64,000 nucleotides of DNA, from NCBI GenBank assembly GCA_950097015.1, contig CATNEN010000034.1, positions 4,712,001 to 4,776,000 on the forward strand, read 5' to 3'. The notes below the pieces were generated by a model. That model was not told the DNA's origin. It ran no database searches and was given only the letters and a program-made list of their open reading frames with translations. Shown in pieces: positions 2,690-33,756 of this stretch. How positions within the stretch are numbered: the first letter of the stretch is position 1; each line of letters begins with the position of its first letter. Made by a program: the position numbers and the translations under genes. The stretch is from Macrostomum hystrix. Lineage: Eukaryota; Animalia; Platyhelminthes.

Positions 2690-2733
<44 letters not shown>

Positions 2734-2746: not shown

Positions 2747-2949
2747 TTTGCTTTTGCACGCTTTAAAAAGCTGAAAGGATTAGAACTTCGACACTTTGTT
2801 GATGTGCGCTGTTTCAGCGCACAATACGGTAAGTCGGGGACTTAGTACTTAGTACTGAATTAACTAGTATTTTCTAGTGATTTAGTGCAAATTGCTATTG
2901 CAACTAGGCCTGTGCTGTGAGAACTGACAAAAAACGTACTTTTAGATGC

Positions 2950-11164: not shown

Positions 11165-11721
11165 TCCTGTTTGAGTTAGATTCGAATGTTTGATTCTTGC
11201 CGTAGCATGCTATATATTGGCCACTAAATTCTTCTTCTTCATCTCAAACAGATATTCTAGTCAGTGGCTCTCACTTACCCAAATAAGTTAATTTTCCTAG
11301 AGGAACAGTTATTAAAAGAGAAAAATTATTCTCTAAAAAGCATGCCTGTGTCGATTCATTATGCAAGGACCACTAGAAAAACTTAAATATCCTACTAGTT
11401 ATTCGTCTAGAAGTCCTTGGAATTATTATTTTAGTTGATGGTATAAGGCTGCTGTGAGAAACGGCAAACTGATGTACACAATTTCCTCAAACGTATTAAT
11501 CTCTGCTTGATATTGTCAAGAAAAGATAACGGGTCTATAAAATTATAAATATTGTGCTATAGAAGCTACAGGATGGTCAAATTTTCTAACGACATACGAA
11601 AACAGGTTTTGCACGTGACTATAAGTAGCATAGTGAGGCTGAAGATGCGAATAATCAAAATAAGGAAATGATGCTAAATATTTACCAAACAAGCAGGCTT
11701 TCACATGCATGCGAATAAGAC

Positions 11722-15053: not shown

Positions 15054-15824
15054 CTAATCAAATAGTGAGACACACTCGCACAGGACGCCCACTGCTTCAG
15101 TGCTAGTGTCCAGCAGATCGCACAGCTTTGGAGTGCGGAAGTAGCTGACGGTCACATTCTGGCTCGGATTGTTGTTCGGCTCAGAGCAGCACCACAGGCT
15201 GGGGTCGATGGGGAAGCCGCAGCTGGCCCAAATCCAGCCTCCAGCGGGCTCCGGACTGCCGGGCGGCTGGACGCCTCCGAGAAATGTTCCAGTGCTGGAC
15301 CGGTCGCACAGAGCGTCTACGTGGCTCATCTCAGTCGCATCGATCACATCGGCCATGATCACCAATCCGGCCTCGCTGTCGCACTTGGCCTTGCTCGGTG
15401 ACCAGAACTGAATGTCAGGGTACAGTCTGTACTTCGAGCCGCACAAGTCGTCTCCGTATCCAGCGGGACACAGAGCGCCTGCTCGAAGTCGTTGGTCGAG
15501 ACGTCGCACGAACACGCGACCTCTCACGGAGCATGTGCCACACTCGCGCACTCGCTTGCTGCACCGATCGAACACGAACAGCCGACAGACACCGACTGAG
15601 TCGCCGACTGTCGCCACGGTGAACGCCTTGCACTGGGGCTCCAGGAGGCAGTGCATGGATAGCACAGTCCGCTGTGGAAACGGCTTCTGGAATTTTTTTG
15701 GTAAACTCGTTTTTAATGCACAAAAACCATCAATGGCATTAAACTCTTGAAGCTCTACAGATTTAAAAAGTAGATGACTGATAATCAGAAAAAATTTTAG
15801 TCTGTAGATAGCTGTGCTTGACAT
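15054..15824 (-). CDS. Secreted PAN/apple-like + C-type lectin domain protein, paralog 1 (internal compensated frameshift)
   Basis: Intronless 256-aa ORF with hydrophobic N-terminus, C...CKAFT...C PAN-like motif, and CTLD with KC, FLGG, WIW, EPNN and LCEC; three paralogs in the window. Confidence 0.8.
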   Translation of the reverse strand: MSSTAIYRLKFFLIISHLLFKSVELQEFNAIDGFCALKTSLPKKFQKPFPQRTVLSMHCLLEPQCKAFTVATVGDSVGVCRLFVFDRCSKRVRECGTCSVRGRVFVRRLDQRLRAGALCPAGYGDDLCGSKYRLYPDIQFWSPSKAKCDSEAGLVIMADVIDATEMSHVDALCDRSSTGTFLGGVQPPGSPEPAGGWIWASCGFPIDPSLWCCSEPNNNPSQNVTVSYFRTPKLCDLLDTSTEAVGVLCECVSLFD

Positions 15825-16706
15825 AATAAAACAATTATGAGCGTGGTTGTGTGAGGTTTCTTTTGCGTAAAGACAGGAAAGGTAAGACAGATGCTGTCGA
15901 TTTCATCAAGGCTGAGTGCCTGTATTGTACGATTAACGAAAATGCAATGATCTCGGTACATGAAGCGCAATTTACTCATAAATAAATAAAAATAAAATAA
16001 ATAAATAATTGACGCGCACAAATTTTAACTTGACACGAATCGTATAAATTGACGAGAATCGGGAATTAATGTTCCTGCTAGTTAGACTCTCAATACTTTT
16101 TTACTTTGACATTGGCTTTTACTTAGCCGGATCGAAAGTTAAGTAAGAAAGTTTATTTTTTGCTTTAAAAGCGTTTCAGATGCTAGTAGTAGTAGTCTAC
16201 TTCAGGGATGTCTTGATTTCTTATGCAACAAATTGAGTCCTCGCAGTAAGAGCCCGTTCATACGGCCGTGAGCCAATTCAGGCCGAGAGTCAAAATATAT
16301 TTAAGTTTAACAGAGCGATAAGGAAGAGGGGTTGGCGGTACGATAACAAGAGTGCGCGACTGAGGGTAGGAGAGGAGGCTAGAACGTGAGCGGCGGACCA
16401 ATCAGAGAGGAGGAAAGAAAGAAAGGATAGAGAATGAGAGATCAGCAGCAGAGATAACGAGAGAGAGAGAACTAGATTGAACTGGACGATGTAAACAAGA
16501 AAAGTGCAGAGAACGAAAGAGTGAATAGAGGACAGAAGGCAGAGACGAAAGTCGCGACAAGGGATGACAAAAGTCACGGATATACACGACGCAACACTCA
16601 TGTTTTATGGAACGAAGTTTTTAAGGTCACTTTTTCTCCGAAAAGTGAATTGCAAGTCTCCCGTATTGTATTACGGAGCTATGTATTACGAATTAGCATA
16701 CTAAAT

Positions 16707-17057
16707 TGCTTTTCAACTTCTATTTCAAACTAAGTAACTTCAATTTCGCCCGCGGGAGTTACACTTTGTGAAATTGATTTACCCTGACTTGGGCAGGCCG
16801 GTCTCGCGGACGAAATTGAAGTTACTAATCGGGTACACACGAGCACCCCATCCACGCGGGCGAAATAGAAGTTACAAACGCCAGCCGGAGAGCCGCCGGG
16901 CGAAATTGAAGTTACTAACGCCAGCCGGAGAGCCGCCGGGCGAAATTGAAGTTACTTACGCCAGCCGGAGAGCCGCCGGGAGAAATGGAAGTTACTAACG
17001 CCAGCCGGAGAGCCGCCGGGCGAAATTGAAGTTAGTTTGAAATAGAATTGAAAACAA
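16707..17057. mobile_element. MITE-like element with about 40-bp TIRs and internal 40-bp tandem repeats
   Basis: TTTTCAACTTCTATTTCAAACTAAGTAACTTCAATTTCGCCC (16710-16751) is the inverted match of 17018-17054; four 40-bp units from 16878; no TSD identified. Confidence 0.7.
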
Positions 17058-18112
17058 AAAAAATTTATATATTGTTTATAAATTTCGTTTTTTCTATTTA
17101 TCCATCGTTATCTGACAGGACCACCTAATATAAACATTGTCTTAATAACATTTTCATTTACTCATATTTTAGGGTGATACTAGCCTATACCTATAAGCCT
17201 ACACCAAAGCTCTAACCGCTGGGCTGCAAGCTCCCCACAGGTACATCCACGCCAAAATCAGGGACTGCTGCCAGCCTAGGGCTTCGGTGCCCAGCTTCTC
17301 TCCATGCATTAAAGCTTAGAACAAATCAATGCAAAATGCCCCTGGAATGCAGCAATGCATCAAATCAAACTCTTTTTTGTTTAAAATTTGCATGCCTCAT
17401 AGCATACGCTGTTTGCTCCGTACCTTTATTACAATGATGTACTCAAAGCCTTAGCTCTTATCTTAGACTCAGAAATTACCATATATGCTATTCGCTTCGC
17501 AAGCACTACTCGCTACTATGAGTAGAAGATCCGTTAAGGGTAACCAAGAGTTACTGAAAAACCTGAATTTCAGAGTGTGAGAATAGCTCAGAATACTAAA
17601 ATTTCAGCGAACATCAAATGCTAGCCCTGGCTAATATGTTAGATGGCTAAACTAGTCCGATACCCACTGAAGGAGATCGAAGTTTGCCATTGCTAACAGA
17701 TCTACAATAAAAATTCATCGATAGGTTGATGATCGGTTGTAAAATTATTTTTCTTTCGAATTTACTTGAGTATTGAGACAGCGCAAACCGACTCATCAAG
17801 CTATACGAGGTCGCAAGGTTCGACACGCTCTTTCGACACGCAAGGTTCGACAAATCTTAATTGCGCATTGTCTGTTTTTCGGATAATCCTTCCACAGCTG
17901 CAATAATATATTAAGCGGTGCCTTTTATAAAATTTCTTGATTTCAAGCGTCTGGGAACCGCATAGGACACCATGGGCTTGTCTGCTCACAGATCAATGAA
18001 CTAAAAAAGAAGACTAACTACTAGTAGGCTATATGCTCATTGTTATGCTCATGCAAGCAGCAGTAAACTTAGGAACTTTCTTTCTTAGAACAGTTTCATA
18101 CTGTAAGAACTC

Positions 18113-18874
18113 TCAGTCAAACGGCGATACGCACTCGCACAAGACGCCGCTAGCACTTAATGTGAGGTCTGCAAGGTCAGAGAGCTTCGGAGAGTCGACC
18201 CATCGAGCGGTAATGTTTTGCTTTCCATTTTCATTCGGTTCACCAGATGACCACAGGCTGCGGTCGATGGGGAAGCCGCAGCTGGCCCAAATCCAGCCTC
18301 CAGCGGGCTCCGGACTGCCGGGCGGCTGGACGCCTCCGAGAAATGTTCCAGTGCTGGACCGGTCGCACAGAGCGTCTACGTGGCTCATCTCAGTCGCATC
18401 GATCACATCGGCCATGATCACCAATCCGGCCTCGCTGTCGCACTTGGCCTTGCTCGGTGACCAGAACTGAATGTCAGGGTACAGTCTGTACTTCGAGCCG
18501 CACAAGTCGTCTCCGTATCCAGCGGGACACAGAGCGCCTGCTCGAAGTCGTTGGTCGAGACGTCGCACGAACACGCGACCTCTCACGGAGCATGTGCCAC
18601 ACTCGCGCACTCGCTTGCTGCACCGATCGAACACGAACAGCCGACAGACACCGACTGAGCCGCCGACTGTCGCCAGGGTGAACGCCTTGCACTGCGGTAC
18701 AAATTTGCACCTCAATGAGCATTCGAGCTCCGTGAGAGGGTACGGCAGATCTCGAACAAACTCGCTTTGGACGCACAAGAATCCGTCGATGGCGTTAAAT
18801 TCATCAACACCGCAGACAACCAGTAGTCGAGCTGTCAGCAGGAGATATGTTATCTTTAGACAACCCAGGTGCAT
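18113..18874 (-). CDS. Secreted PAN/apple-like + C-type lectin domain protein, paralog 2
   Basis: True ATG most likely 18874 (MHLGCLKITYLLL..., parallel to the MHL starts of paralogs 3 and 4); EPN motif in WSSGEPNEN. Confidence 0.85.
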   Translation of the reverse strand: MHLGCLKITYLLLTARLLVVCGVDEFNAIDGFLCVQSEFVRDLPYPLTELECSLRCKFVPQCKAFTLATVGGSVGVCRLFVFDRCSKRVRECGTCSVRGRVFVRRLDQRLRAGALCPAGYGDDLCGSKYRLYPDIQFWSPSKAKCDSEAGLVIMADVIDATEMSHVDALCDRSSTGTFLGGVQPPGSPEPAGGWIWASCGFPIDRSLWSSGEPNENGKQNITARWVDSPKLSDLADLTLSASGVLCECVSPFD

Positions 18875-20180
18875 GGCTCGCTGAGTTATGCACCAAAAGT
18901 CTCGATTTACCTTGTAAGTGCTGTGGAGTCTGCTCTGTTTGGTACAATCAAATGTGCTCGTCAAGCATCTCTGGTGCGCTTATTATGGCTTCTCTATGGA
19001 TTTAGTTCTTTTTTTTGCTAGGAAGCTACTAGCTCGTATACTTGTTGAAAAAGCCAACGAGTCTTTATTGTGCTGTAAATTAGCCTTAGAACAATAGCAT
19101 TTTAAGTGACTATTGTTCTCTTAAATTTTAAATTTCACAATGGAATATTACAAGAAATACAGTTTTCAGTAACTAATCGAACTATCTTTTTTTCTGGCCT
19201 TGAGGCTGCTGTGGGGCACGAGTTCAAGGCATTCGTATTGTGCACTCACCGGTGAAGTCCTGGACAATGCACGAAAATCGTCGCTAACTTTACGCTTGAC
19301 AGACGTAGAGCAGCCTCGTTGGATAAAATAAAGGGGAAAAACTTAGCTGCCTAGAACCTAGGGCTTTTTTTGGTCGTTGTAAATGTCTAGCTTACAACTA
19401 CACAAGCTACACAGCTTAGCTTAGCTTACAGCTTGCTAGTAGCTTAGCAAAATCGCTAAAAAAGTCCGAAAATAGCTTGCTTTTCATACCGTTAAGACTC
19501 CAAGTAATAACCTGTTCTAGTATTCAGTAACTTATTGATATTGATAATGCTGCAGGATATATCAATCTCCAATCTCACAAGCGTCATTCCATGCCGTGAA
19601 ATTTTTTAGAGTGTGGCAAAAGTCTTTTTCTTGGAAATTTCGTGTGGTGATATTCCTTCCTGGACGCCGGTACGCGTGATGATCCTCGTTTGAAGACTGG
19701 CTCAGTGATGCCTAATAAAATTTAATGATGATATAATAAAGCAACTATGTAGTGACAAAAATAAGCCAGCAGAACAATAATGTAACTAAGTATACGATTA
19801 GTCTGCACATTGACTAACCAGTTCATATGGATATATGGCAGTTATTTCGTTAAAGACAAGCGGTAGCAGCCAGACTCTCTCAAGCAGGACCTCCATCGCA
19901 GAATGATTAAGAACCGTTGCTGAGTTTCTGTATGGATGTGGCTACTAGCAGTAGCATGCATGCTGGTGCAAGGTTAATATGTTTAAAAATCAAAGATTAT
20001 ACTACAGGTTATAGCATCGTAGAAATAAATAATGAATATTTTATTCCAACATAACGTTCGTATGATGAAACCAACAAACCCATCCATGAGGTTTTTGGCG
20101 GCGTACAGCAATAAGTTGACTTGAGTACCAACATTGCAAGCAAAATGCGACTAGCATAGATCGATTTGCAAACTTCTCGT

Positions 20181-21148
20181 CAGCAAAGTTCGGCCAGCAA
20201 AGTTCGGCTAGCAAAGTTCGGCCAGCAAAGTTCGGCTAGCAAAGTTCGGCTAGCAAAGTTCGGCTAGCAAAGTTCGGCTAGCAAAGTTCGGCTAGCAAAG
20301 TTCGGCTAGCAAAGTTCGGCCAGCAAAGTTCAGCTAGCAAAGTTCGGCCAGCAAAGTTCGGCTAGCAAAGTTCGGCCAGCAAAGTTCGGCTAGCAAAGTT
20401 CGGCTAGCAAAGTTCGGCCAGCAAAGTTCGGCCAGCAAAGTTCGGCCAGCAAAGTTCGGCTAGCAAAGTTCGGCCAGCAAAGTTCGGCCAGCAAAGTTCG
20501 GCCAGCAAAGTTCGGCCAGCAAAGTTCGGCCAGCAAAGTTCGGCTAGCAAAGTTCGGCCAGCAAAGTTCGGCTAGCAAAGTTCGGCCAGCAAAGTTCGGC
20601 CAGCAAATTTCGGCCAGCAAAGTTCGGCTAGCAATGTTCGGCCAGCAAAGTTCGGCTAGCAAAGTTCGGCCAGCAAAGTTCGGCTAGCAATGTTCGGCTA
20701 GTTCGGCAAAGTTCGGCTAGCAAAGTTCGGCTAGCAAAGTTCGGCCAGCAAAGTTCGGCTAGCAAAGTTCGGCCAGCAAAGTTCGGCCAGCAAATTTCGG
20801 CCAGCAAAGTTCGGCTAGCAATGTTCGGCCAGCAAAGTTCGGCTAGCAATGTTCGGCTAGTTCGGCAAAGTTCGGCTAGCAAAGTTCGGCTAGCAAAGTT
20901 CGGCCAGCAAAGTTCGGCTAGCAATGTTCGGCTAGTTCGGCAAAGTTCGGCTAGCAAAGTTCGGCTAGCAAAGTTCGGCCAGCAAAGTTCGGCTAGCAAA
21001 GTTCGGCCAGCAAAGTTCGGCCAGCAAATTTCGGCCAGCAAAGTTCGGCTAGCAATGTTCGGCCAGCAAAGTTCGGCTAGCAATGTTCGGCTAGTTCGGC
21101 AAAGTTCGGCTAGCAAAGTTCGGCCAGCAAAGTTCGGCTAGCAAACTT
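20181..21148. repeat. Minisatellite, 14-bp unit AGCAAAGTTCGGC(C/T)
   Basis: Directly visible tandem array. Confidence 0.95.
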
Positions 21149-21944
21149 CATAGATCCATTAAGCTTATGCGTTTATAGCTCCTGATTGAGAATTCCTAAA
21201 ATGTATTTGACTAATGCTGTTCCTGGGATTCATTTGAGAATGCGCAATACCTGCTTGGGAACCTTGATTACTTCAGCACCTTTCTCGTTGCAATGTTTGC
21301 TTCCAAAGCATCATGTTTGATTACATTGGACAGGGTTTCCCCACAGTTTTCTGATAAAAAGCGCTAAATTACCAATCAAAATCGAACAAAGCATATTTAC
21401 ACTTGCCTTTTTGCGCTGCACTTGTGGCCCAATAAGATTGAACTTGATACAAAGCAAAACTGGACGCTAGTTCTGACTGCTTGTACGCTCGTAATTAGCT
21501 CGTAGGATAAATTTGCAGCAGCAAATAAAGAATAGCACATGAAAATCCCACACCTGCAATTTAGTGTCAACTAAACTACCTGCTAAATTCAGAATGCATC
21601 AATGATAGTTTCTGTCCTGCAAATAAGTCGTTGTTTAAGCTAATTTGCTAAAGCTTACAATGGTCAACAGTTTTCAGTTGAAAGTAAATAGCTTGAAAGT
21701 GCAAAGTCTAATCAGTAAAGCATTTCCCGGATATTACTGCTTCGTATGCAAGTTTTCAAGGCTAATACCAGCCTGCAGGGCCTTCTGTCTCACCCAATAT
21801 TTGCTCGACAGCTAAGCATAGCATTTTATAGCATCTCTTAATTTCAGTTGGTCCAGACCTGTTTGCAGTGACGAGGATTAAATATAGGATTGCGAACCTT
21901 GCTTGTGAAACGCAAAGGAAACTTTTCAATAAGCAGGGGCGACG

Positions 21945-22712
21945 ATGCATTTGACTCTTCTCATCCTAGCTCACCTCCTGCTTGGCTTGATGCCCTGCTA
22001 TGAAGCTGCTGGCCTCATAGAGCAGTTCGATGGCATCAACGGATTCCTGTGCGTTCGCGGTGAGTTCACCCGGATCGTGCCACAAGCCAACTCAAATATC
22101 GAGTGCGCCAGCCACTGCCTCCTGGAGCCCCAGTGCAAAGCCTTCACCCTGGCGACAGTCGGCGGCTCAGTCGGTGTCTGTCGGCTGTTCGTGTTCGATC
22201 GGTGCAGCAAGCGAGTGCGCGAGTGTGGCACATGCTCCGTGAGAGGTCGCGTGTTCGTGCGACGTCTCGACCAACGACTTCGAGCAGGCGCTCTGTGTCC
22301 CGCTGGATACGGAGACGACTTGTGCGGCTCGAAGTACAGACTGTACCCTGACATTCAGTTCTGGTCACCGAGCAAGGCCAAGTGCGACAGCGAGGCCGGA
22401 TTGGTGATCATGGCCGATGTGATCGATGCGACTGAGATAAGCCACGTAGACACTCTGTGCGACCGGTCCAGCACTGGAACATTTCTCGGAGGCGTCCAGC
22501 CGCCCGGCAGTCCGGAGCCCGCTGGAGGCTGGATTTGGGCCAGCTGCGGCTTCCCCATCGACCGCAGCCTGTGGTGCTGCTCTGAGCCGAACAACAATCC
22601 GAGCCAGAATGTGACCGTCAGCTACTTCCGCACTCCAAAGCTGTGCGATCTGCTGGACACTAGCACTGAAGCAGTGGGCGTCGTTTGCGAGTGTGTCTCA
22701 CCCTTCGACTGA
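21945..22712 (+). CDS. Secreted PAN/apple-like + C-type lectin domain protein, paralog 3
   Basis: 255-aa intronless ORF, signal-peptide-like MHLTLLILAHLLLGLMPCYEA, EPNN motif. Confidence 0.87.
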   Translation: MHLTLLILAHLLLGLMPCYEAAGLIEQFDGINGFLCVRGEFTRIVPQANSNIECASHCLLEPQCKAFTLATVGGSVGVCRLFVFDRCSKRVRECGTCSVRGRVFVRRLDQRLRAGALCPAGYGDDLCGSKYRLYPDIQFWSPSKAKCDSEAGLVIMADVIDATEISHVDTLCDRSSTGTFLGGVQPPGSPEPAGGWIWASCGFPIDRSLWCCSEPNNNPSQNVTVSYFRTPKLCDLLDTSTEAVGVVCECVSPFD

Positions 22713-23568
22713 ATTAGCTTAATTTAACTAATGACAATGACTAATGACAATGCCATTACATCGAAATATTTTTTTCGGTTTGACAGCATTCAAGGTAGAA
22801 AAATCCAGCCTTTTTTAGTCTCAATTTAAAACAATTACAATCAATACCCCCTACTAACTCAGACAAGAGAGCGGGAGGTTGAAATTTTCAAAGAAATATT
22901 TGCAAAGAACATTTTTACGATGCCTTATTCGATAAACTGCTTTCATAATAAAAAAAATAAATAAATAATCAATAAACTGCTTTCATAATAATTAAATTAA
23001 ATAATTAAATAATCAATAAACAAAAAACTGCTTGAGATGCTAATTTTTTCTCGCTTTGAATTGACATTTATTCGTCATGAATTAGGCTATTGTGATGAAT
23101 GGATTAGGCTTTTAATTTACGTGATGAAATGATGCAATAATGGATTTAGATACATTTCTATAATTGACATCCATTTTAGTTTTTGATTTACATAGTTCAG
23201 TTGATTTGAGTGAAGCTTTTAGCACAGGTTGTTAATGAAAAGGGAACTAGCATACTACGAGTGATGTAGCACCGGCAGATTCACTGGCCCACGTTATCTC
23301 ACTGTGTGTATTCCTGTCTTGTTGTTTAGCGCAACTTCATCTATCTGCTCTTGCCAAAGTCGATGCTTCTACTTGACTGCAGTTGTAAGCCGTCACTGCC
23401 GTTACTGAAGACTTGGCCGAAAACGGTCATAGACAGCTGCCACATCTATAAATACATATGCTGCTGAACACCGTTCCCACCGATTGTCTCACTTCGATTT
23501 AGCTTTCTGCCCGATCATTTTTTGTTCCGCTAAGTTTGCTTTTCACTTTTATTTACTGAAAGTAAGCC

Positions 23569-25500
23569 ATGGAGGACGTCCACAGATCATGAGCACACAG
23601 TGGATGGTTCAGTCCACAGATCATGAGTACACAGTGGATGGTTCAGTCCACAGATCATGAGTACACAGTGGATGGTTCAATCCACAGATCATGAGCACAC
23701 AGTGGATGGTTCAGTCCACAGATCATGAGCACACAGTGGATGGTTCAGTCCACAGATCATGAGCACACAGTGGATGGTTCAATCCACAGATCATGAGCAC
23801 ACAGTGGATGGTTCAGTCCACAGATCATGAGCACACAGTGGATGGTTCAGTCCACAGATCATGAGCACACAGTGGATGGTTCAGTCCACAGATCATGAGC
23901 ACACAGTGGATGGTTCAGTCCACTTGCTTACTAATGACGAGGATGAATACTATAATTTTGATGAAGAGCCTAGTGAGAACTGTGACAACGTTGAAAGCGC
24001 AAGTAGCTCAGATTCAGATACGGACATCGAAATGGAAGATCAGCTGTGGTACCAAGCTGTCGAAGGAACTGACGTCAGACCCTCACTGGTTCCAGAGTTC
24101 GTGGGCACCCCCGGGGTTCGACCGGACTGGGTATCACCACAACCGGCGAATGGCAGAGAGGCAGAATTTTTGCTTCAGTATTTGACCTACGAGATGTTTG
24201 AAAGCATTGCCAGGTGGACAAACGAACGGCCCTGGAGTTTCGCTGAGGGAAAGTCAGTCGATAAGCTGCCAAAGGTGGTTTCTACATGGAAAGATTGTAG
24301 TGTGGATGAGGTGAGAAAGATGTCGTGCTGCTTATGGACGTTAATGACAAGCTAATGACAAGATACAAGTTAATGACAAGAACTAATGAGATTAGTTCTT
24401 ACTGGACGAAAGATCCCGTGTACCACAGCTCTTTTTTGGCTCAGTCGCACGCACTCTCGCGTGATCGTTTTAAGCAGATCCTTTCCTGCCTTCGCTTCTA
24501 CAGTAGCGCCGGTTCTGCTCCCCAGAGCCCAATCGACAATGATCTCTCCGTTCCTTGCTCTTGTGCAGCGTGCTTGTCAAAACAACTACATGCCAGACCA
24601 GCAGCTATCGATCGATGAGACTATGGTTATGTACAAAGGGCGGATACAGTTAACGCAGTACATCCCCTCTAAGAAAAGCAGGTACGGAATCAAGCTGTAT
24701 TGTCTATGTGAGGCCAATTCTGGATACCTGTGGAACTTTGCCGTCCACACGACGCAGCAGGAAATGCCAGATTCGGTGCTGGACTAGACTGCGGAGCACT
24801 GTCTTTTAGCGAGCGAGTCGTCGCCGAGCTCTGACGTGACGTGTTGCACCTCGGCCACGACATCTTCACCGACAGCTGGTTTACGTCGCATCGTGGCTAG
24901 CTTCGTGGCTGCTGGCCCGTGACACCATGCTTACCGGCACCGTGCGCAAAGATCGTGGACCGCCGCCACTGCTGCGAGTCGCTAACCTGCGCCCTACATC
25001 AACAGCATTCGCTAGGTGCGGCAGTGTGTTAGCGTGCAAGTTTGTTGACTCCAAGGCAAAAAGACAGTAAACCTGCTTGACACGGCCGGCACTGCACAGT
25101 GTCATGATGTGGCCCGCGTACGCCCTGGTGGTCAGCAGCAAGTTGTGGCGAAGCCCGTCAGCATCACCATGTATAGTCGTTTTAAGGGTGGGGTGGACCA
25201 CATGGACTCTAGCACGAGTCCCTACATAACGAATCGGAAGTCATCGCGCTTGTTTAACAAGCTGGCCTTCCATATGATTGTTATACTAGTCCACAACGCT
25301 TGGATCGTGTACAACTTTCACGGCGGCAGCATGAACTTCCTGCACTTTTTGCGCAAGGCACTGGACGTTCTGGTTGCGGAGACCGGCGTTGCCAGACGTC
25401 GAGGTAGCCCTCCGGCTGCAGCAGCGGGCCAACTGGCGCAGGTGACGGTCCTCCTGCTGCTGGTGGCGGTCCCAGACATTCGCCCAGCAAGGCGCCCAAG
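23569..25500 (+). pseudogene. piggyBac-like (PGBD4-type) transposase, frameshifted and 3'-truncated
   Basis: YWTKDP...SRDRFKQILSCLRF; LSIDETMVMYKGR...QYIPSKKSRYGIKLYCLCEANSGY; YSRFKGGVDHMD...LVHNAWIVY; several frameshifts and stops; ATG in AAGCCATGG context at 23569; no TTAA-bounded TIRs found. Confidence 0.85.
23584..23923. repeat. Minisatellite, exactly 10 x 34 bp (AGATCATGAGCACACAGTGGATGGTTCAGTCCAC) inside the transposase 5' end
   Basis: 340 bp, bounded by GTCCAC on both sides. Confidence 0.95.
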
Positions 25501-25504
25501 GAAG

Positions 25505-26260
25505 GAGCCCTTAGCCCTGAAAAAGATTTGTTATAAGATAAATAGCGCAAGGAAAGGAAATCTATCGGATATAAAGGCCGAGATAATCTAAGACGACCTG
25601 AACTTAGACGAGCATCTAAGATCGACTCAAATGGAACACAGCAGCTACCCGAGTGGTTTACTGGATATTTCTCGCGGAGATGCGGTAGGTTTTTCGCTAG
25701 AAGAACTCGAGAGGAGGATGAACGCCGAGAAACGTGATACTCGTATCTGCCTGTCCTACATTGAGAACGAGTTAAGTGCATTGTCGATTGATCAACTAGA
25801 AGTTTCAACGGTGGATGAGTACTTCGACACCATTTCGTCTGAAGATGCTCCAATGGACTCGGTCATAATTAACGAGTTAAATGCCAAGGTAGACGACTTG
25901 GAGAAGACGTGCCAAAATGCAATCAGTGTTTCCAAGGAGTGTGCTGCTGTGCAAAAACTTACAGATTTTTTCGCCACTCGAGGAATCAACATCGCTTGGG
26001 AGACATGTCCTATCGAGATTCCGGCTGACCGCTTACGTTAGTTTTTTTGCAAGGACGTTCGTTGCAAGGACGGTGAATTGTATTTTCCATCGACGTTGAT
26101 CGGATACTGAGCTGCTTTGTTACGATATTTCTGACGCGTGCGTGGCATTAAGAGGTTTTACCATAGACATGACATTCTTGAATCGTGTTGGCATCCCAGA
26201 AACGACACAGAGAGGTAGCAAATTTAGAAGGAATTGCCGTTTTCGTCTACTAACCGTCGG
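25505..26260 (+). pseudogene. Probable Crypton-like (tyrosine recombinase, DUF3504/ZMYM-KCTD1-related) remnant
   Basis: One frame broken by stops: ...IPADRLR*FFCKDVRCKDGELYFPSTLIGY*AALLRYF*, resembling the recalled Crypton motif L.xF...VRKxDGxxYxxxSLxxxxAxLxRY; shifted frame GFTID...LLTVGNG; no HMM search run. Confidence 0.5.
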
Positions 26261-26578
26261 GAACGGATGTGGTGTAAAATATTACAATTTTACCATAGAC
26301 ATTTTTTGCCGTCCCGCTCGGATGTTGCCTGAGTGGACGAAAACGGCCATCTGTCTGGCTTAGCACCAACCGTCGATATCGGCTGAAGACCATGTAAAGG
26401 ATAAAAAACGTTTCACGCCATACTACTTCACTGAAACTCTTCAGTCATCAGAGATGCGTTTGTCGTCGTTTTGTACTTTTGATTTCTGAGTTTCAATATT
26501 ATTAGAAACGGCCACATTTGCTAGCTGTCACTAGTTGACCGTACTGTCAATACAGATCATAATAATCAATGGACTGTA

Positions 26579-26875
26579 TGTAACTAAGTGTAACTAAGTC
26601 GTTAATGCGAGGTGCAGAAGGAACGCAAGAAGGTGATTACGAGCTATATTTGCGAGGGGCTGGGCCTCGCGCACTTGTTAAGTTGGGTACAGAACAGTCT
26701 ATGGCTGCTTAAGCAGCGGCATCGGTCAGAACAGTCTATGGCTGCTTAAGCAGCGGCATCGGTCAGAACAGTCTATGGCTGCTTAAGCAGCGGCATCGGT
26801 CAGAACAGTCTATGGCTGCTTAAGCAGCGGCATCGGTCAACTAACAACAAAGATAGTTAAAGTACGAGTACAACA
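26579..26875 (-). repeat. 3' LTR (297 bp; 37-bp unit x4 and 10-bp terminal duplication)
   Basis: Aligns to 30720-30889; 37-bp units at 26690, 26727, 26764 and 26801. Confidence 0.93.
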
Positions 26876-26904
26876 TTTCTCCCTGATCTCAAGATCAAAA
26901 GAAA

Positions 26905-27978
26905 TTAAGCTTCGTAGCGGACTGGTGCCGACCTCTCGCGACTTGACCGCCGGGGTTCGCCGTTCCCGTTCCGCTCAACGGCTCGCTCTACTCCAGGCGG
27001 CTGTGGTTGCGAGCCTGGGGCCGGCCGGATGTCAGCAATGTGACGGGGAAGTCCATCGACCTCCACTGTAGCCCCTTGTCTCTGGCCTGTCACGTGCCCC
27101 CTTGGCCACTCGTCGGTACACCTGACAGCCGGCGGCTTGACGAACACTTCCGTTCCGACCGGCAGGGCAGGGTTTGACTCCGGTGTCTCAGAGGCCTCGG
27201 GGAGAGACAACATGGGCGGTTTCCAGTCGTAAGTGCTGAGCATTCTGTTGGGCACGCTGTACTCCCGGGTACCATCCTTCGGAGCCATGTTGTACCAGAA
27301 TACCATGTCCAGCACGTCCTTGCCGGTTCTGGATGCCATCCGCTTGATCGTCCGATGATTTCGCTCGACTATCCCGTTGCCCGACGGCCGGTAAGCGCAG
27401 CGGAAGAGGAGCTGCACTCCCCATGCTTCGCAGAATTCACGCACCTCGGCAGAGCGGAATGTCGCCGAGTTGTCCAGAAGCAGCTGCCAGGGAGGGCCCC
27501 GCTCTCGGAAGACTTGCACGAGTGTCCCTATGATCAAAGCTGTCCGCTCGTCTGGGAGTTTTCGCCACAGTGCGAATCTACTCGGCCTGCAGTCAACAAT
27601 CGACAGATAGCGGTCGTCCTTAAAGTGGGTCACGTCGCAGGCCAAACGCCACCAGTTTGCGTCCACCTCGAGACTTCCATGGTCCCAATTCACCGGCGCA
27701 GGGTCCACGGATTTGCAACGGATGCAGTTTACCACGACGCGCTCGACCTCTTCGCGTAGTACCTCACGCCCGGCGAGGCACAGTTTGGCCAGGTAGAGCG
27801 TCCTGTCCACGCCGAAGTGATGCTTCTCGTGGCACGCACGGAGATCCGAGTCGATAGGGTGTAGCGCTACTGCACACAAAGGCCGCTGGCGCAGCCACTG
27901 CTGTGGTACTCGCGTCAGCGCATCTGCCTTGTTTAACGAGGATGGCACCGTGCAGTGACACATCCAGCTCCAGGCCAC
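26905..27978 (-). CDS. Gypsy integrase domain
   Basis: HEKHHFG...CIRC zinc-binding motif; ACDVTH, LLDNSATF, NGIVERNHRTIK (DDE). Confidence 0.9.
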   Translation of the reverse strand: MAWSWMCHCTVPSSLNKADALTRVPQQWLRQRPLCAVALHPIDSDLRACHEKHHFGVDRTLYLAKLCLAGREVLREEVERVVVNCIRCKSVDPAPVNWDHGSLEVDANWWRLACDVTHFKDDRYLSIVDCRPSRFALWRKLPDERTALIIGTLVQVFRERGPPWQLLLDNSATFRSAEVREFCEAWGVQLLFRCAYRPSGNGIVERNHRTIKRMASRTGKDVLDMVFWYNMAPKDGTREYSVPNRMLSTYDWKPPMLSLPEASETPESNPALPVGTEVFVKPPAVRCTDEWPRGHVTGQRQGATVEVDGLPRHIADIRPAPGSQPQPPGVERAVERNGNGEPRRSSRERSAPVRYEA

Positions 27979-29931
27979 ATTCTCCTGCCGTGTCCCGGAT
28001 AAAAGCCAGCCGCCTCCTCGCTAGAGCTTCGCCCAGCCGCTTGACCCTGACGGGCTTGTCACCGGCGATCAGTGATCGAATCCAGCCGTACACAGTTGCC
28101 GAGTCGGTCATGATTTGGACTCTCTTTGAACCCCAAGCAATGGCTTGATTGAGATCCTTGATGACCTCTTCGAGTTCGGCTAGGTTTATGTGGGCGGCGT
28201 CGTCCGGCTTGCGAAGCCATGATGCGTGCTCTGCGATGACACCGTTTACTTCTAAACATGCGCCGATTGCGATGCTGCTGGCGTCGCACCAGACGCGGCA
28301 GGCTGAGGCGTCGTCGACTGCCCACACGCCGCTCACTGGATCGCGCTCTTGAACCATTCTGCTGATTTCGCGGGCCATCTGGATCACGGACTCGTTCACA
28401 TTGGCTTCCCAGGCGACTCCCCCGGCGGCGCGCTTAAGGTAGCTGCAGGCGACGCGCGACCATCCGACAACTGGGAAATGTCCCACCAATTGGCCGCACC
28501 AGGAGAATAGCTGGCGCCGAGTCGCAGAATCTGCGAGGTGAGAAAGAACGTTGTCCCGCTTCCAGCAGGCGACCCCGTCTTCGCGTCGGAAGATGCGCAG
28601 ACCCAGTACCCGGCCTCCGATGAGACTTTCAGGCGGTTTCACGTCGAGCCCAAAGCGTGATTGGAGATTCAGAACGCGTTCGTTCGGGACACTGTCATTG
28701 GCCACGATAATGTCGTCTATGTACGAGTCGGTGCCAGCGCGCACGTCCTCCTCCATAGAGAGCACTCTGTTGACTACCGCGGTCATGATTCTCGGAGCCA
28801 CGTTCAGGCCAAAGCCGAGTCTCGTTAGGCAGTAGCGGCGGCCTTTGAACTCCACCACCTCGTAACGCCAGAGCGAGGGCTCAACTCTCAACTGCAGATA
28901 GGCCTTTCGCAGGTCAATGACGCTGGCATTCTCGCCCAGTCGCCTCCATTCGCGAATTTTTGCTCCGCAGACGACGCTATCGGCAGTGTGGCTAGATACG
29001 TGCTGATTCAACTCACGATAGTCCATTACAGGTCTCACCTTCGCTTTGTTGACTTGCACAACCGCCATCAGTGGGATTATACCGTTGCACTCGCCGTCGA
29101 ACGGTACGAGCCAGCCAGACGCAATCCACTCCCTGATCTCGGCCTCGTAATCTTCCGTTGCTTCCGGTGGCACTCTGTTCTGCGCTATTCTGTTAGATAA
29201 GCTTGGAGCTTCTCCGAGCCACTTCCATGCAACCGTCCATTTACCGTCTGCGAACCAAGCAGAGAAGTCCACGTCCTCGATCAGCACGTGGTTATCGCCG
29301 CCTGATGGACTAGAAGCCGACTTAGCTTCACTTAGTAGCGCACGTGGTTTGAGTACCGAGTCTTCGGTCCGCTCGAACCCCGGATGGCGCTCTTGCAATG
29401 CTGAATCACTGTTTGAGCCACCCGCTGCTGAGGCTGAGTCTCTCGCCGGGCCACTCGCCGCCGATGACGAGTCTCTCGCCGGGCCACTCGCCGCCGATGA
29501 CGAGTCTCTCACTGGGCCACTCGCCGCCGATGACGAGTCTCTCGCTGGACCACTCGCCGCTGAGGCCGAGTCTCTCGCCGGGACTGCTCTGGGCCCCGTT
29601 TCCACACCGGATGGGCCTCTCAATGCACCAAAGGAAACGGTGCGGCCGTCACCGCTAACATTGACGCCACCCAATCGCATGATGGCGTCCATACCAAGAA
29701 GCAAGTCGAAACCGGGTAGAATTTCAAGAACGAGACAACTTAGCGATACCCGGCTGCTGCGCACAGTACATCAGCCTCCCATCCGCACTCTGCTGCATCT
29801 CCATTCATCATGGTGACTCTCTCTGTGGTGGGCGTCTTCCGTAGTCCGTAGGTCCTTGGCGACACAATAGACCTGGAGCAACCAGTATCGACCAGGGCCA
29901 CAACAGTAGAACCGTTAACATTAAGACTCAA
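27900..29931 (-). CDS. Gypsy protease, RT and RNase H (frameshift between PR and RT)
   Basis: ALVDTGCSRSIV; VRPVMDYRELN, IDLRKAY, GFGLNVAP, SYIDDII; WCDASS, INLAELE, MTDS. Confidence 0.9.
29425..29590. repeat. In-frame 33-bp tandem repeat (PARDSSSAASG x about 5) in the PR-RT linker
   Basis: Visible in both DNA and translation. Confidence 0.85.
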
Positions 29932-29990
29932 CGACGGTAGGCGCGCAGATCCAGTGGGAAGCCAGTTTGCGCAGAAATTTTGGGCTTCCC

Positions 29991-30689
29991 TTACTCGTTT
30001 TTGGTGGATTTACACGCTGTGGGCAATAAGCGCCCACGTGGCCGGTGTTTCCGCAGACGTAGCAGCTGTCTAGTACGGTTCCCGCGACTCTGGCATTCCC
30101 GGCTGAGATGACCCTCCTTGCCGCACGAGTAGCAGGTGATCTTGTTGCGTCGAACAGCTTTCTCTGCGCCCTTAGCGTTCTCGGCTCCGACGCAGCAGAA
30201 ATCACGATCGATCATGAGGCTTCGCGCCTTTTCAACAATTACGGAGTTCTCCAGTTCTTCCAGTGAGCACGATGCGACTAACTGGTGACTCACTGCGCCG
30301 GGTAGATCGCGAATGAACGCGCACTTTATCCATTCGTCTCCGGGCATCTCGTCGACCAGGCGTGCCAGCCTTGTCAGGTCGGCCAGAAAAACATCCACCG
30401 ACTCCCCAGGACCCAGTCTTCGGGAGACGAACGCGTCAAAGGCCTTGAACTTGTTGAGGCTGAACGCAGAGACCAAGGCTGCTCTGAGCGTCTTGTAGTT
30501 AGTCTTGCTGGCTTCGTCTAGGCCTTGGTAGACGGCAAAGGCACCGCCCGTTAGGAAGAGTGGCAGAAAGGAAGCCAGGTCGGTGATCTTCTGCAGCTTA
30601 GCGACAAGCTCCAGTTTCTGAGCCCACTGCGAGAAATCTTCGTCGCCATCAAATTGCTTGATGATGTCGCTGAACTTTATTGCGCTCAT
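29991..30689 (-). CDS. Gypsy gag with CCHC zinc knuckle
   Basis: FDGDEDFSQWAQKLELVAKLQ; CYSCGKEGHLSREC; second knuckle CYVCGNTGHVGAYC in a shifted frame. Confidence 0.9.
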   Translation of the reverse strand: MSAIKFSDIIKQFDGDEDFSQWAQKLELVAKLQKITDLASFLPLFLTGGAFAVYQGLDEASKTNYKTLRAALVSAFSLNKFKAFDAFVSRRLGPGESVDVFLADLTRLARLVDEMPGDEWIKCAFIRDLPGAVSHQLVASCSLEELENSVIVEKARSLMIDRDFCCVGAENAKGAEKAVRRNKITCYSCGKEGHLSRECQSRGNRTRQLLRLRKHRPRGRLLPTACKSTKNE

Positions 30690-30719
30690 TCTTGCTTTCG
30701 TTTAAAAGCCGCGATAGCT

Positions 30720-30889
30720 TGTAACTAAGTCGTTAATGCGAGATGCAGAAGGGAACGCAAGAAGGTGATTATATTTGCGAGGGGCTGGGCCTCGCGCACT
30801 TGTTAAGTGGGGTACAGAACAGTCTATGGCTGCTTAAGCAGCGGCATCGGTCAACTAACAACAAAGATAATTAAAGTACGAGTACAACA
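30720..30889 (-). repeat. 5' LTR (170 bp)
   Basis: Matches 26589-26875 apart from 3 substitutions, small indels and repeat copy number. Confidence 0.93.
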
Positions 30890-31370
30890 CTGTACCCAGC
30901 CCTTGGAAGCGCTGCGCAATAGCTGCGGATGTGCCCTTTGCTGTAGCTCGTATATCTGCCCCAAATTTGAATGTATACCTTAAATACTTTCCGAGCGACT
31001 TCCTATACAAACATGATAGAAGCACTGTTGCCGCTTTTCTGCTCCCCAACATGGCTTCATGCTCCGGTTGGGTTCGTGAACGCTTTCAAATGTCAGTCGA
31101 GATTGTTTCGGATTTCTTGAGCAATTGTGAGTCACACCTACCTCCCAGTCTATACTAACTATCTTCAATTAATTTTGTAATATTACTCGAACAAACGTAC
31201 AGAACCTGCATATAACATTCGCATTAGTAGGCTGTTTAAAAAAACACTAATGTTTTAAATAATAAAAAGCCTTAAGCACCAAAACAATAGTCACCATTGC
31301 TATAAAAGTGTGCATTGGCTGCTTGACTTCATCAATAATAATCGATTTAGACACTGGGAGATAATTGTCA

Positions 31371-32106
31371 ACTGGGGGAACATTGTCAACTGGGTATCAT
31401 TGTCAACTGGGGGATCATTGTCAACTGGGGGATCATTGTCAACTGGGGGATCATTGTCAACTGGGGGATCATTGTCAACTGGGGGATCATCGTCAACTGG
31501 GTGATCATTGTCAACTGGGGGATCATTGTCAACTGGGTGATCATTGTCAACTGGGGGATCATTGTCAACTGGGGGAAAGTTGTCAACTGGGGGATCATTG
31601 TCAACTGGGGGAAAGTTGTCAACTGGGGGATCATTGTCAACTGGGGGATCATTGTCAACTGGGGGATCATTGTCAATTGGGGGAACATTGTCAACTGGGG
31701 GATCATTGTCAACTGGGGGATCATTGTCAACTGGGGGATCATTGTCAACTGGGGGATCATTGTCAACTGGGGGATCATTGTCAACTGGGGGATCATTGTC
31801 AACTGGGGTATCATTGTCAACTGGGGGATCATTGTCAACTGGGGGATCATCGTCAACTGGGTGATCATTGTCAACTGGGGGATCATTGTCAACTGGGTGA
31901 TCATTGTCAACTGGGGGATCATTGTCAACTGGGGGATCATTGTCAACTGGGGGATCATTGTCAACTGGGGGATCATTGTCAACTGGGGGGATCATTGTCA
32001 ACTGGGGGATCATTGTCAACTGGGGGATCATTGTCAACTGGGGTATCATTGTCAACTGGGTGATCATTGTCAACTGGGGGATCATTGTCAACTGGGTGAT
32101 CATTGT
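31371..32106. repeat. Minisatellite, 19-bp unit GATCATTGTCAACTGGGGG
   Basis: Directly visible tandem array. Confidence 0.95.
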
Positions 32107-32982
32107 AGCTTTGAAAAGCTGAAAATGCAGCTGCTAAAAAGTATATACGAGCTACAAGACGATTTTAAAATATTTCTGCTCCCCGAAGGGGGACAAAACT
32201 TGCTAGTTTACTTGTGCTAAATCCACAACGCCATGGGTATTAAGTGACAAAGTACTAGCTCTGTCGATGTCAATATTTATCATAGTGGAAATGGAAACAG
32301 TTGAGTTGATGAGCAGAAGTTGAATTCGCTGCCAGTTGGGTGAAAGACACCCATTAAATAGATTAGTTTTCGCTGACATGTAATATTTCCATATATATGT
32401 TGTGAACATTGTCGAGTGAAGCCAGACGAGTATGAAATCCATTCTAAAGCAGAGTATTTGTTGAACTCAGAATGCACGCATGGTTGAACTGGATTAGACA
32501 AGTTTGAAATGTTTGCACGTGCCAAGCTATAGCTGCATATCTCACAATTATGCATGCCTATATTGATTCACAATCGCTTTGGTGATGAGTCGCAGAGCTG
32601 CTCCATCGTTGTATATCTCCTTGACAAAACACTTTAACTTGTTAAGAAAATCTGATTCATAGAGGAAATGGAAAATTTGCTGGTTCAAAATAGGAATAAA
32701 AATACTCATGAATTTTAGTCTTTTAGATGTTTAATTTCACATCTCCCAAATTTCACACCCTCCAACTCTGGCAAGGGCAGTGCACTCAAGAAATTGGGAG
32801 ATGTCAAGTTTAGGCTTTGAAAAATACTTAAAAACATAATGTTTGGGAGACTTAGAGGGTAGAAAAGCTAGGGGAGAAGGCGGGTAGGAGGTTAGGAGAG
32901 AAGGGGTAGAATAGGGAGGCTAATCGGAGAGTTAAAATGATATTCCAAGTATTTAAGCATTTCACAGCAGCAACTGCACAGC

Positions 32983-33756
32983 TTAGTCGAACGGTGAGAC
33001 GCACTCGCACAGGACTCCTCTGGCATCATTCGTCAATGCCTGAAGGTCCGACAGTTTCGGCACGTTGTACCAGCGCATGATGATGTCCTGGTTCGGGTTG
33101 TTGTTCGGCTCACCTGGAGACCAAAGACTAGAGTCCACTGGAATGTTGCAGCTGGCCCAAATCCAGCCTCCAGCGGGCTCCGGACTGCTGGGCGGCTGGA
33201 AGCCTCCGAGAAATGTTCCAGTGCTGGACCGGTTGCACAGAGCGTCTACGTGGCTCATCTCAGTCGCATCGATCACATCGGCCATGATCACCAATCCGGC
33301 CTCGCTGTCGCACTTGGCCTTGCTCGGTGACCAGAACTGAATGTCAGGGTACAGTCTGTACTTTGAGCCGCACAAGTCGTCTCCGTATCCAGCGGGACAC
33401 AGAGCGCCTGCTCGAAGTCGTTGGTCGAGACGTCGCACGAACACGCGACCTCTCACGGAGCATGTGCCACACTCGCGCACTCGCTTGCTGCACCGATCGA
33501 ACACGAACAGCCGACAGACACCGACTGAGCCGCCGACTGTCGCCCTGGTGAACGCCTTGCACAGAGGCTCCTGTGTGCAATGAACTGCACACTCTAGCTG
33601 GGAGTCTACTTTTGGAAATGAACGAGTGAATTCCCATCGAATGCACAGAAATGCGTCGATTTCTTTGAAAATGTTGATTACTTCTGCTTCTGTGACTGTA
33701 AAGGTGAGCCAAGCACATGCAGAAATAATGAGCAGCGTGCGCAGTTGAAGATGCAT
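32983..33756 (-). CDS. Secreted PAN/apple-like + C-type lectin domain protein, paralog 4
   Basis: 257-aa intronless ORF, signal-peptide-like MHLQLRTLLIISACAWLTFTVTEA, WSPGEPNN. Confidence 0.87.
   Translation of the reverse strand: MHLQLRTLLIISACAWLTFTVTEAEVINIFKEIDAFLCIRWEFTRSFPKVDSQLECAVHCTQEPLCKAFTRATVGGSVGVCRLFVFDRCSKRVRECGTCSVRGRVFVRRLDQRLRAGALCPAGYGDDLCGSKYRLYPDIQFWSPSKAKCDSEAGLVIMADVIDATEMSHVDALCNRSSTGTFLGGFQPPSSPEPAGGWIWASCNIPVDSSLWSPGEPNNNPNQDIIMRWYNVPKLSDLQALTNDARGVLCECVSPFD

Follow-up and report, generated by a model that had tools for sequence, protein, structure and literature searches.

In the flatworm Macrostomum hystrix, four lectin-like genes share a nearly identical center flanked by dissimilar ends, and they are very probably anciently diverged members of one family whose core has been overwritten repeatedly by interlocus gene conversion. 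They lie in a 64,000-nucleotide stretch of contig CATNEN010000034.1, referred to here as the window. The four genes, g1 to g4, are complete, uninterrupted open reading frames (ORFs) of 253 to 257 amino acids. Their proteins have a signal peptide, followed by a PAN-like half and then a C-type lectin domain (CTLD). Each gene can be divided into a 5' coding (N) segment, a homogenized core, and a 3' coding (C) segment. g1 (15054 to 15824, minus strand) encodes a secreted PAN-like plus CTLD protein of 256 amino acids, with the N segment at 15639 to 15824, the core at 15191 to 15638, and the C segment at 15054 to 15190, as placed by DNA alignment and BLAST. Its paralog g2 (18113 to 18874, minus strand; 253 amino acids) is divided, by BLAST, into N (18698 to 18874), core (18250 to 18697), and C (18113 to 18249) segments, the last being unique in the genome; the ATG at 18874 was taken as the family-consistent start instead of the TTG at 18964 given in the ORF listing. 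g3 (21945 to 22712, plus strand; 255 amino acids) is inverted relative to the other three, with segments at 21945 to 22127 (N), 22128 to 22575 (core), and 22576 to 22712 (C), and its C segment is common to g1 up to 22701. g4 (32983 to 33756, minus strand; 257 amino acids) comprises N (33563 to 33756), core (33148 to 33562), and C (32983 to 33147) segments, and this C segment, too, is unique in the genome.

The spacers hold repeats and mobile elements. A minisatellite with a 14-bp unit (20181 to 21149) lies outside the genes between g2 and g3, and another with an 18-bp unit (31353 to 32106) lies upstream of g4. Between g3 and g4 are a fragmented piggyBac-type transposase remnant (23861 to 25591, plus strand), recognized by its ORFs and a DDE_Tnp_1_7 match (E, 5.6e-17), and an inserted LTR-retrotransposon coding region (26905 to 30689, minus strand) with a gag zinc knuckle, RT, DUF7047, and integrase. 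In all four gene copies, the GC-rich core is also crossed by long ORFs in alternative frames and on the complementary strand.

How sharp is the boundary between core and ends? The block common to g1 to g4 is 415 to 450 bp long. By DNA alignment and BLAST, it is 98 to 100% identical among g1, g2, and g3. Measured on g1, nucleotides 187 to 634 are 99.1% identical in g2, 172 to 760 are 98.5% identical in g3, and 192 to 606 are about 98% identical in g4, while over nucleotides 187 to 630 the g4 core is about 95.5% identical to the other three. Some private core differences are kept, about 20 in g4 and 3 or 4 in g3. Pairwise identity is 38 to 53% in the N segments and 57 to 64% in the C segments, except for those of g1 and g3, which are 95.7% identical and include 118 nucleotides without a difference, ending about 30 nucleotides before the stop codon. 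The 234 polymorphic sites among the four genes are distributed as 131 in nucleotides 1 to 180 of the coding sequence, 15 in 181 to 600, and 88 in 601 to 768. A Sawyer-type runs test with permutation gives p ≤ 2e-4 for g1/g2, g1/g3, and g2/g3; pairs with g4, in which the core differences are scattered, do not reach significance by longest run. An earlier note on this DNA had reported the near-identical core, with coordinates that prove right to within a few bases, and had seen that g1 and g3 share a C segment despite different N ends and unrelated flanks. It had also argued that this is not plain segmental duplication, and that view is supported. The gene flanks are unalignable (25 to 50% identity).

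The segments also differ in age. Synonymous divergence (dS) between the paralogs is not uniform along the gene: it is 0 to 0.05 in the core among g1, g2, and g3 and 0.04 to 0.12 for pairs with g4, and it is saturated in the N and C segments. The sole outside point of reference is L031 (protein P0001), a contig from an independent assembly (Logan SRR24204725) that resembles an ortholog of g3. It carries a g3-type N segment (83 to 93% identical to g3 and 33 to 64% to the other window genes) and has the same N(g3)-core-C(g1/g3) arrangement. Between g3 and L031, dS is 0.20 in N, 0.22 and 0.15 in segments A and B of the core, and 0.27 in C; this evenness implies that mutation rate and synonymous constraint are alike along the gene. 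The conversion of the core that the earlier note had proposed is thus supported and is recent, with core dS among g1 to g3 below the approximately 0.2 that separates g3 from L031. Within the core, 17 sites unite g1 to g4 against L031, and none pairs g3 with L031 to the exclusion of g1, g2, and g4. The N segment has 111 sites that place g3 with L031. Judged against this one outside contig, then, the paralogs are closer to each other in the core than to an ortholog-like sequence, with orthology retained outside it; the 17-to-0 count, together with the dS contrast, points to concerted evolution by interlocus gene conversion. The third-position GC content (GC3) is 0.77 and 0.73 in the two homogenized segments, compared with 0.62 in N and 0.59 in C, and the higher values fit GC-biased conversion.

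How might conversion produce such genes? Non-allelic conversion very probably copies the central coding sequence from paralog to paralog, again and again, the converted part being the second PAN-like half, the linker, and the first two-thirds of the CTLD. Tracts probably begin in the approximately 200 bp that are most conserved at the protein level, and they may stop where divergence blocks heteroduplex formation or where selection acts against the replacement of a distinct end. Borders set in either way would be self-sustaining. Conversion passes over the signal peptide, the first half of the PAN module, and the EPN-loop/C-terminal part, where each gene retains old sequence of its own. Now and then a tract or crossover probably reaches one end, giving genes that share N or C but not both, as with the C segment of g1 and g3. 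The molecular route (conversion or double crossover) is inferred; in a single genome the two look alike, and so does selection on the tract ends. The mechanism that homogenizes the core is textbook partial concerted evolution; the example is an unusually clean and large one. As for the earlier suggestion that conversion might be RNA templated, the sequence offers no support for it. Tracts stop within the coding sequence, and in one pair of relatives the common stretch extends upstream past the ATG by 400 bp or more.

The window samples a much larger family. At least 151 loci (HMM matches from 301 candidates) belong to it. The detailed set consists of 72 full-length ORFs, with contigs C7, C38, and C39 and parts of C9, about half of the family, left out. 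Among the 72, no two reach 93% identity in every segment; 27 pairs have just the core in common, 6 have core and C, and 3 have N and core. The variable-constant-variable layout noted for the window is therefore real and extends across the family. A homogenized island of about 200 bp runs along a whole contig of approximately 16 Mb; over nucleotides 190 to 399 of g1, median third-position identity is 0.96 at separations below 20 kb, 0.90 at separations above 2 Mb within a contig, and 0.635 when the genes lie on different contigs. Homogenization falls with physical distance: median identity in segment B is 0.88 at <20 kb, 0.74 at 20 to 200 kb, 0.66 at 0.2 to 2 Mb, 0.62 at >2 Mb, and 0.56 between contigs, and the corresponding values for segment A are 0.98, 0.97, 0.97, 0.94, and 0.75. 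In 637 pairs with a common core island, flank similarity was seen upstream in 15 and downstream in 8, and it mostly accompanies a similar adjoining N or C segment. The family is undescribed, secreted, and very large, has single-ORF coding regions, and evolves by birth and death. A word-based protein search of a 5.8-billion-protein collection, by single sequence and by profile, yielded one true relative, P0001, and neither g3 nor g4 had an exact protein match in public assemblies.

What kind of proteins are these? An AF2 model of g3 built on the 72-sequence family alignment reached a pLDDT of 92.5 and a pTM of 0.85 (a 23-sequence alignment had given a pLDDT of 37.6). Foldseek against the PDB returned the carbohydrate recognition domains (CRDs) of DC-SIGN, L-SIGN, codakine, and CD23 at probability 1.0, with target TM scores of 0.78 to 0.84 (DC-SIGN, 0.84), and structure alignment to codakine gave a Z score of 17.5 and an rmsd of 2.0 over 124 residues, spanning model residues 117 to 253. 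Among the domain tests, it is this predicted fold alone that confirms the family as CTLD. Pfam Lectin_C (PF00059) matches none of g1 to g4 at E < 0.1 and 0 of the 72 members at E < 0.01; the family profile does hit CTLD sequences of known structure (mosGCTL-1, E 1.1e-5; codakine, E 4.4e-5). The EPN motif is present in g1 to g4 and most family members, and the variable C segment contains the EPN loop, as had been claimed. At the WND position the residues are L-x-D, of which the D alone is conserved (about 85%), and g1 to g4 have Gln in place of Glu after EPN. The g1 to g4 proteins may function as lectins, and any part they might play in immunity, mating, or adhesion is speculative. The name PAN-CTL, used in the earlier note, holds for its second half by the AF2 fold and is less secure for its first: the PAN_1 cut-off of 21.4 bits was missed by the only match (g3, 20.5 bits), and PAN_4 matched 5 of 72 members at E < 0.01, with g3 at 16.5 bits against a cut-off of 27. 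Against solved PAN/apple structures, profile positions 31 to 88 match Eimeria MIC5 (1hky; E 5.5e-4) and the HGF N domain (E 0.22), and the structure lists for the whole g3 model are dominated by CTLD matches.

Could the layout instead serve to make new proteins? Under programmed diversification, the core would be a hinge at which N and C modules are reassorted, in the germline or somatically, perhaps with RNA or cassette donors. The N/core/C combination is unique in 72 of 72 genes, the cluster lies in a minisatellite-rich region, and relatives on contig C3 do combine their ends differently: L028 matches L022 in its N segment and upstream flank, and L030 in its C segment and downstream flank. 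There, the N-segment clade L022/L028/L027 is rejected by the C-segment data (delta lnL, 90.5), the AU tests giving p values of 4e-72 (this clade), 6e-55, and 0.023 for clades that were named after the identities had been seen. The mixing of ends that the earlier note described is thus clear in the C3 relatives; in the window it amounts to one case, the g1/g3 C segment. The g1+g3 clade has support of 100/99.8 in the C segment and is not rejected by the N data (p, 0.35), which are saturated. Counts of contig-label changes on the segment trees, 13 to 20 for every segment, are uninformative. Against programmed reassortment, few genes have an end segment in common (the 72 fall into 61 N types and 66 C types), and silent donors were not found: in a DNA-level search of the 220-Mb genome, with very common words skipped, the g1 and g3 N segments, the g2 and g4 C segments, and a loop patch of L077 matched only themselves. 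Programmed diversification is accordingly improbable. The related proposal that the core is kept as a recombination hinge, at which more than 150 lectins reassort N (PAN-half) and C (sugar-loop) modules together with their flanks, is a long shot; if it were true, this flatworm would have a combinatorial recognition system operating in the germline, or even somatically.

Interlocus conversion must also be weighed against an assembly error in which the cores are truly distinct and were homogenized by Pilon/Arrow mis-mapping or collapse. The assembly was made with canu from PacBio CLR reads and polished with Arrow and Pilon (PMC10468722), in several rounds, and multi-mapping short reads can homogenize near-identical paralogs. 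Such polishing could erase a few paralog-specific bases, so the 100% core identity may be slightly overstated. It is unable to make 440 bp of identity from sequences that are 50 to 70% identical. Moreover, g1 to g4 sit in unique flanks on one contig and keep their private core differences, mosaics in many clusters on several contigs show graded identities of 91 to 99%, and the independently assembled L031 has the same mosaic as g3. An artifact on this scale is very hard to believe.

Are the ends, rather than the cores, the unusual part? If the core gave the true age, the genes would be young duplicates whose ends had diverged very fast through targeted hypermutation or strong positive selection. 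Some young relatives hint at this. In the youngest pair, L076/L077 (10.7 kb apart), 13 of 17 differences fall within 38 nucleotides, in two patches in the C-terminal loop, and in L006/L010, dN exceeds dS in the C segment. The L076/L077 excess of 13 nonsynonymous differences to 1 synonymous is not significant (hand-computed binomial, about 0.15), and over eight young pairs, summed by hand, the C-segment dN/dS is about 0.8, which is no more than suggestive of positive selection there. Fast divergence is contradicted by paralog ends that are saturated at synonymous sites, by the unalignable flanks, and by the even dS between g3 and L031, and it is scarcely credible for the window genes. Between those two lineages, the g3-type C segment has a dN of 0.009 and a dS of 0.27 (dN/dS, about 0.03) and, on these rates, is under strong purifying selection. 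The earlier idea that the ends are newly diversifying is therefore not supported: they are ancient and, by the donor search, unique in the genome.

It is barely tenable that a nucleotide-level function (RNA structure, a small-RNA target, or an overlapping frame) holds the cores identical with no copying, since core dS to L031 (0.15 to 0.22) is similar to that in the rest of the gene, island third-position identity drops to the between-contig median given above, core dS between window genes and members on C3 and C1 is 0.87 to 1.24, and the additional ORFs crossing the core, the point in its favor, are expected wherever a GC-rich sequence is conserved as DNA.

MHC, KIR, and RHD/RHCE are known cases of partial concerted evolution in which recognition segments stay divergent, and theory holds that conversion is limited by divergence or by selection. 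In those cases, too, the genes are mosaic, identity stops sharply within the coding sequence, and conversion weakens with distance. The M. hystrix genes differ in protein family and phylum, in that both ends escape conversion, and in being known from sequence alone. The sea-urchin Sp185/333 (SpTransformer) genes and the Plasmodium var genes with their homology blocks likewise form large clusters in repeat-rich DNA, where conserved blocks lying between variable ones can serve as recombination substrates, and many elements have been reshuffled often and recently; the M. hystrix ends, in contrast, are old, mostly unique, and in one measured case conserved between lineages. Cassette-donor systems (VSG, vls, and chicken pseudo-V) rely on silent partial donors, of which the DNA-level search of the 220-Mb genome found none. 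Lineage-specific CTLD expansions occur in invertebrates, such as nematode clec, with hundreds of secreted tandem genes under birth and death. The M. hystrix clusters are likewise large, secreted, and shaped by birth and death, but the genes are too diverged for Pfam Lectin_C and carry a PAN-like N-terminal module. A further comparison is with KLRC/NKG2, vertebrate CTLD receptor paralogs with region-limited interlocus gene conversion (PMC3210942). They too are reported as clustered CTLD-family paralogs, homogenized in part and otherwise distinct, with a signature of concerted evolution. There, the ligand-binding domain is homogenized and the signaling parts are distinct, whereas in M. hystrix the scaffold is homogenized and the presumed ligand loop is distinct. 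The M. hystrix genes also differ in that they encode small secreted proteins in uninterrupted coding regions and number at least 150, with an island of about 200 bp homogenized over megabases.

Overall, M. hystrix holds a secreted, lectin-like family that is invisible to Pfam and that annotation pipelines and orthology methods will mishandle, because trees based on the core are wrong. With at least 150 genes of uninterrupted coding sequence in a compact 220-Mb genome, and saturated ends beside cores of near-zero dS, it offers a good natural system for asking what sets the borders of conversion tracts (homology limits or selection), over what distances ectopic conversion acts, and whether flatworm coding sequence is shaped by GC-biased conversion.

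Within a 19-kb part of the window lie four complete open reading frames for secreted proteins with a PAN-like module and a C-type lectin domain (CTLD): g1 (15054-15824, minus strand), g2 (18113-18874, minus strand, the family-consistent start being the ATG at 18874), g3 (21945-22712, plus strand), and g4 (32983-33756, minus strand). A tblastn search of the whole window found no further copies. In the DNA alignment, identity climbs from ~50% to 98 to 100% over some 30 nt around g1 CDS nt 187-202, and identity with g1 ends at nt 606 in g4, nt 634 in g2, and about nt 760 in g3. Across this core (g1 nt 187-630), g1 to g3 are 98.4 to 99.1% identical to one another and 94.6 to 95.5% identical to g4. 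The 5' coding ends (N segments) are just 38 to 53% identical and the 3' ends (C segments) 57 to 64%, with the exception of g1/g3 (95.7%), while the upstream and downstream flanks are unalignable. CDS nt 181-600 holds just 15 of the 234 polymorphic sites, and a runs test with site order permuted gave p <= 2e-4 for g1/g2, g1/g3, and g2/g3. The earlier note's description and coordinates of the four genes and their shared core are correct by ORFs, alignment, and segment identities. In all four genes, the GC-rich core also has long ORFs running through it in alternative frames and antisense (15169-15750, 18033-18884, 21998-22597, and 33065-33718); their conservation simply reflects that of the underlying DNA, and nothing indicates that they are coding.

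The surroundings are unusually rich in unrelated minisatellite arrays (60-13662, 35624-59005, and 61769-63792; periods of 12 to 61 bp, lengths of 0.4 to 5 kb), which account for the window's extreme GC and AT skews. The array at 9609-13662 has a 16-bp unit that reappears at 61769-63792. Between g3 and g4 is an LTR-retrotransposon coding region (26905-30689, minus strand) whose gag (zinc knuckle), RT/DUF7047, and integrase ORFs are long and open, and which includes an in-frame 33-bp repeat (29436-29582). A piggyBac-type transposase remnant (23578-25591, plus strand) is broken across several frames, its 5' end overlapped by a 34-bp tandem repeat (23578-23923).

Why should the middle of these genes be so alike? 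The assembly (GCA_950097015; 220,453,370 bases in 42 contigs, the window being C34:4712001-4776000) was built with canu from PacBio data and then polished by Arrow and Pilon (PMC10468722). Misassembly of the core is unlikely, given that each copy is bordered by unique sequence, one copy is inverted, and the repeated stretch spans just ~440 bp. Polishing could have erased a few true differences in an already near-identical core, but it could not have produced the pattern. Many clusters show this mosaic in graded form (91 to 99%), and the mosaic gene is also carried by an independent contig, L031, an ortholog-like 1080-bp Logan contig (run SRR24204725) whose protein, P0001, is the sole close relative in the protein collection. 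Two further explanations, that the ends mutate faster than the core or that the core is under special synonymous constraint, both fall because dS between L031 and g3 is even from one end of the gene to the other (N, 0.20; nt 190-399, 0.22; nt 400-630, 0.15; C, 0.27).

Segment identities and dS checked along the genes are uneven between paralogs. dS is saturated in the N and C segments, near zero in the core (0 to 0.05 among g1 to g3; 0.04 to 0.12 with g4), and 0.14 in the C segment common to g1 and g3; very old genes are thus overlaid by several exchange layers differing in age. The L031 N segment is 83 to 93% identical to that of g3 and 33 to 64% identical to the other three, its core is ~95% identical to each of the four, and its C segment is 95 to 98% identical to g1 and g3. 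All four window genes agree against L031 at 17 core sites, and at none does g3 side with L031 against g1, g2, and g4; the N segment has 111 sites that place g3 with L031. The common ancestor of the four cores thus postdates the separation of the L031 lineage. This is concerted evolution, with cores younger than that separation and genes far older.

A genome profile search gave at least 151 family matches from 301 candidates, mostly open frames of ~250 aa clustered on many contigs; 84 distinct ORFs were recovered, and the 72 full-length ones were aligned. About 20 matches with internal stops or partial profile cover (e.g., G000:C1:21892007-21892530, C3:8208225-8208422, and C39:6511944-6512447) are pseudogenes or fragments, as birth-and-death evolution predicts. 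The variable-constant-variable layout is seen throughout the aligned family. At >=93% identity, no pair among the 72 genes shares N, core, and C together; 27 pairs share the core only, 6 core plus C, and 3 N plus core, and N is common to 8 pairs of a further class whose core identity is 80 to 93%. The same threshold gives 61 N, 46 core, and 66 C types.

A sub-core, g1 nt 190-399, is homogenized far more broadly than the rest of the gene. Its median identity is 0.98 below 20 kb, 0.94 beyond 2 Mb on one contig (for the most part C3, with 38 genes), and 0.75 for genes on different contigs (at third positions, 0.96, 0.90, and 0.635); for nt 400-630, the medians are 0.88, 0.62, and 0.56. Core dS between window genes and C3/C1 members is 0.87 to 1.24. 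Homogenization that decays with distance and ends at contig borders is expected of ectopic recombination and not of sequence-level constraint. Tract starts are concentrated at nt 180-209 (564 of 680), with additional ones near nt 90-105, and 442 tracts end at nt 390-419. These pile-ups coincide with the edges of protein-conserved islands, and tracts would terminate where homology runs out. GC3 is 0.77 and 0.73 in the homogenized parts, 0.62 in N, and 0.59 in C, which is compatible with GC-biased conversion without proving it. On C3 (~2 to 12 Mb; loci L005 to L071), the ~200-bp island is 94 to 97% identical, synonymous sites included, in ~38 genes over ~10 Mb; outside it, those genes are just 40 to 65% identical.

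Are the ends mixed as well? Among the C3 relatives, N and C ends are truly reassorted. L028 matches L022 over 400 bp of upstream flank (98.75%), in N (98%), and in the core, but the two C segments are just 63% identical. The L028 C segment is 95 to 97% identical to those of L023 and L030, whose N segments are 61 to 72% identical to its own; L028 and L030 also share 274 bp of downstream flank (89%). Separate segment trees conflict strongly there, for clades picked after the identities were known (AU p, 4e-72 and 6e-55 on C data; 0.023 on N data). In the window, the sole mixed-end case is g1/g3, and the saturated N data do not reject a g1+g3 clade (p = 0.35); mixing here rests on a 40- to 100-fold segment distance difference, not on tree topology. 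Genome searches found no other copies of the N segments of g1 and g3 or the C segments of g2 and g4, so the ends have not been taken from silent cassettes. Each window gene keeps its own old N and, g1/g3 aside, its own old C. In the youngest pair found (L076:451-1188 and L077:451-1188, both minus strand, 10.7 kb apart on contig C10), 13 of the 17 differences are clustered in the loop that follows EPN, in two stretches of consecutive bases (CDS nt 661-666 and 685-698). They could have arisen by multinucleotide mutation or by patch repair; the 38-nt patch separating the two has no match elsewhere in the genome.

The four proteins begin with a hydrophobic, signal-peptide-like stretch and lack a C-terminal anchor. 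Pfam gave only a below-threshold PAN_1 match for them and 72 relatives, and no Lectin_C match in any. Positions 112-252 of the family profile match solved C-type lectins (mosGCTL-1, E = 1.1e-5; codakine, E = 4.4e-5), and positions 31-88 match the Eimeria MIC5 apple domain (E = 5.5e-4); the PAN assignment of the N-terminal module is probable. An AlphaFold2 model using the 72-sequence alignment reached pLDDT 92.5 and pTM 0.85 (pLDDT 37.6 with 23 sequences only), and its residues 117-253 superpose on codakine (Z = 17.5) and DC-SIGN-type domains (TM = 0.8), a predicted fold that establishes the CTLD identity. EPN is present, and the WND position is degenerate, reading L-x-D. On the model, the N segment (aa 1-62) covers the signal peptide together with the initial strands and helix of the PAN-like module; the core (aa 63-210) the remaining module, the linker, and the CTLD through helix 2 and strand 2 into the beginning of the long loop; and the C segment (aa 211-256) the EPN loop and strands 3 to 5.

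The earlier note had proposed gene conversion, possibly RNA templated, in a diversifying recognition family. An RNA template is without support. Between L031 and g3, dN is 0.12 in N, 0.04 and 0.02 in the two core parts, and 0.009 in C; the resulting C-segment dN/dS of ~0.03 argues against current diversification of the EPN loop in the g3-type gene, and with N and C dS saturated between paralogs, the idea of a system that is diversifying at present finds no support. Conversion homogenizing the core is borne out by core versus end dS, the L031 core sites, the runs test, and the distance decay. The mechanism is of a known kind; what is new is the lectin-like family in which it operates and the scale.
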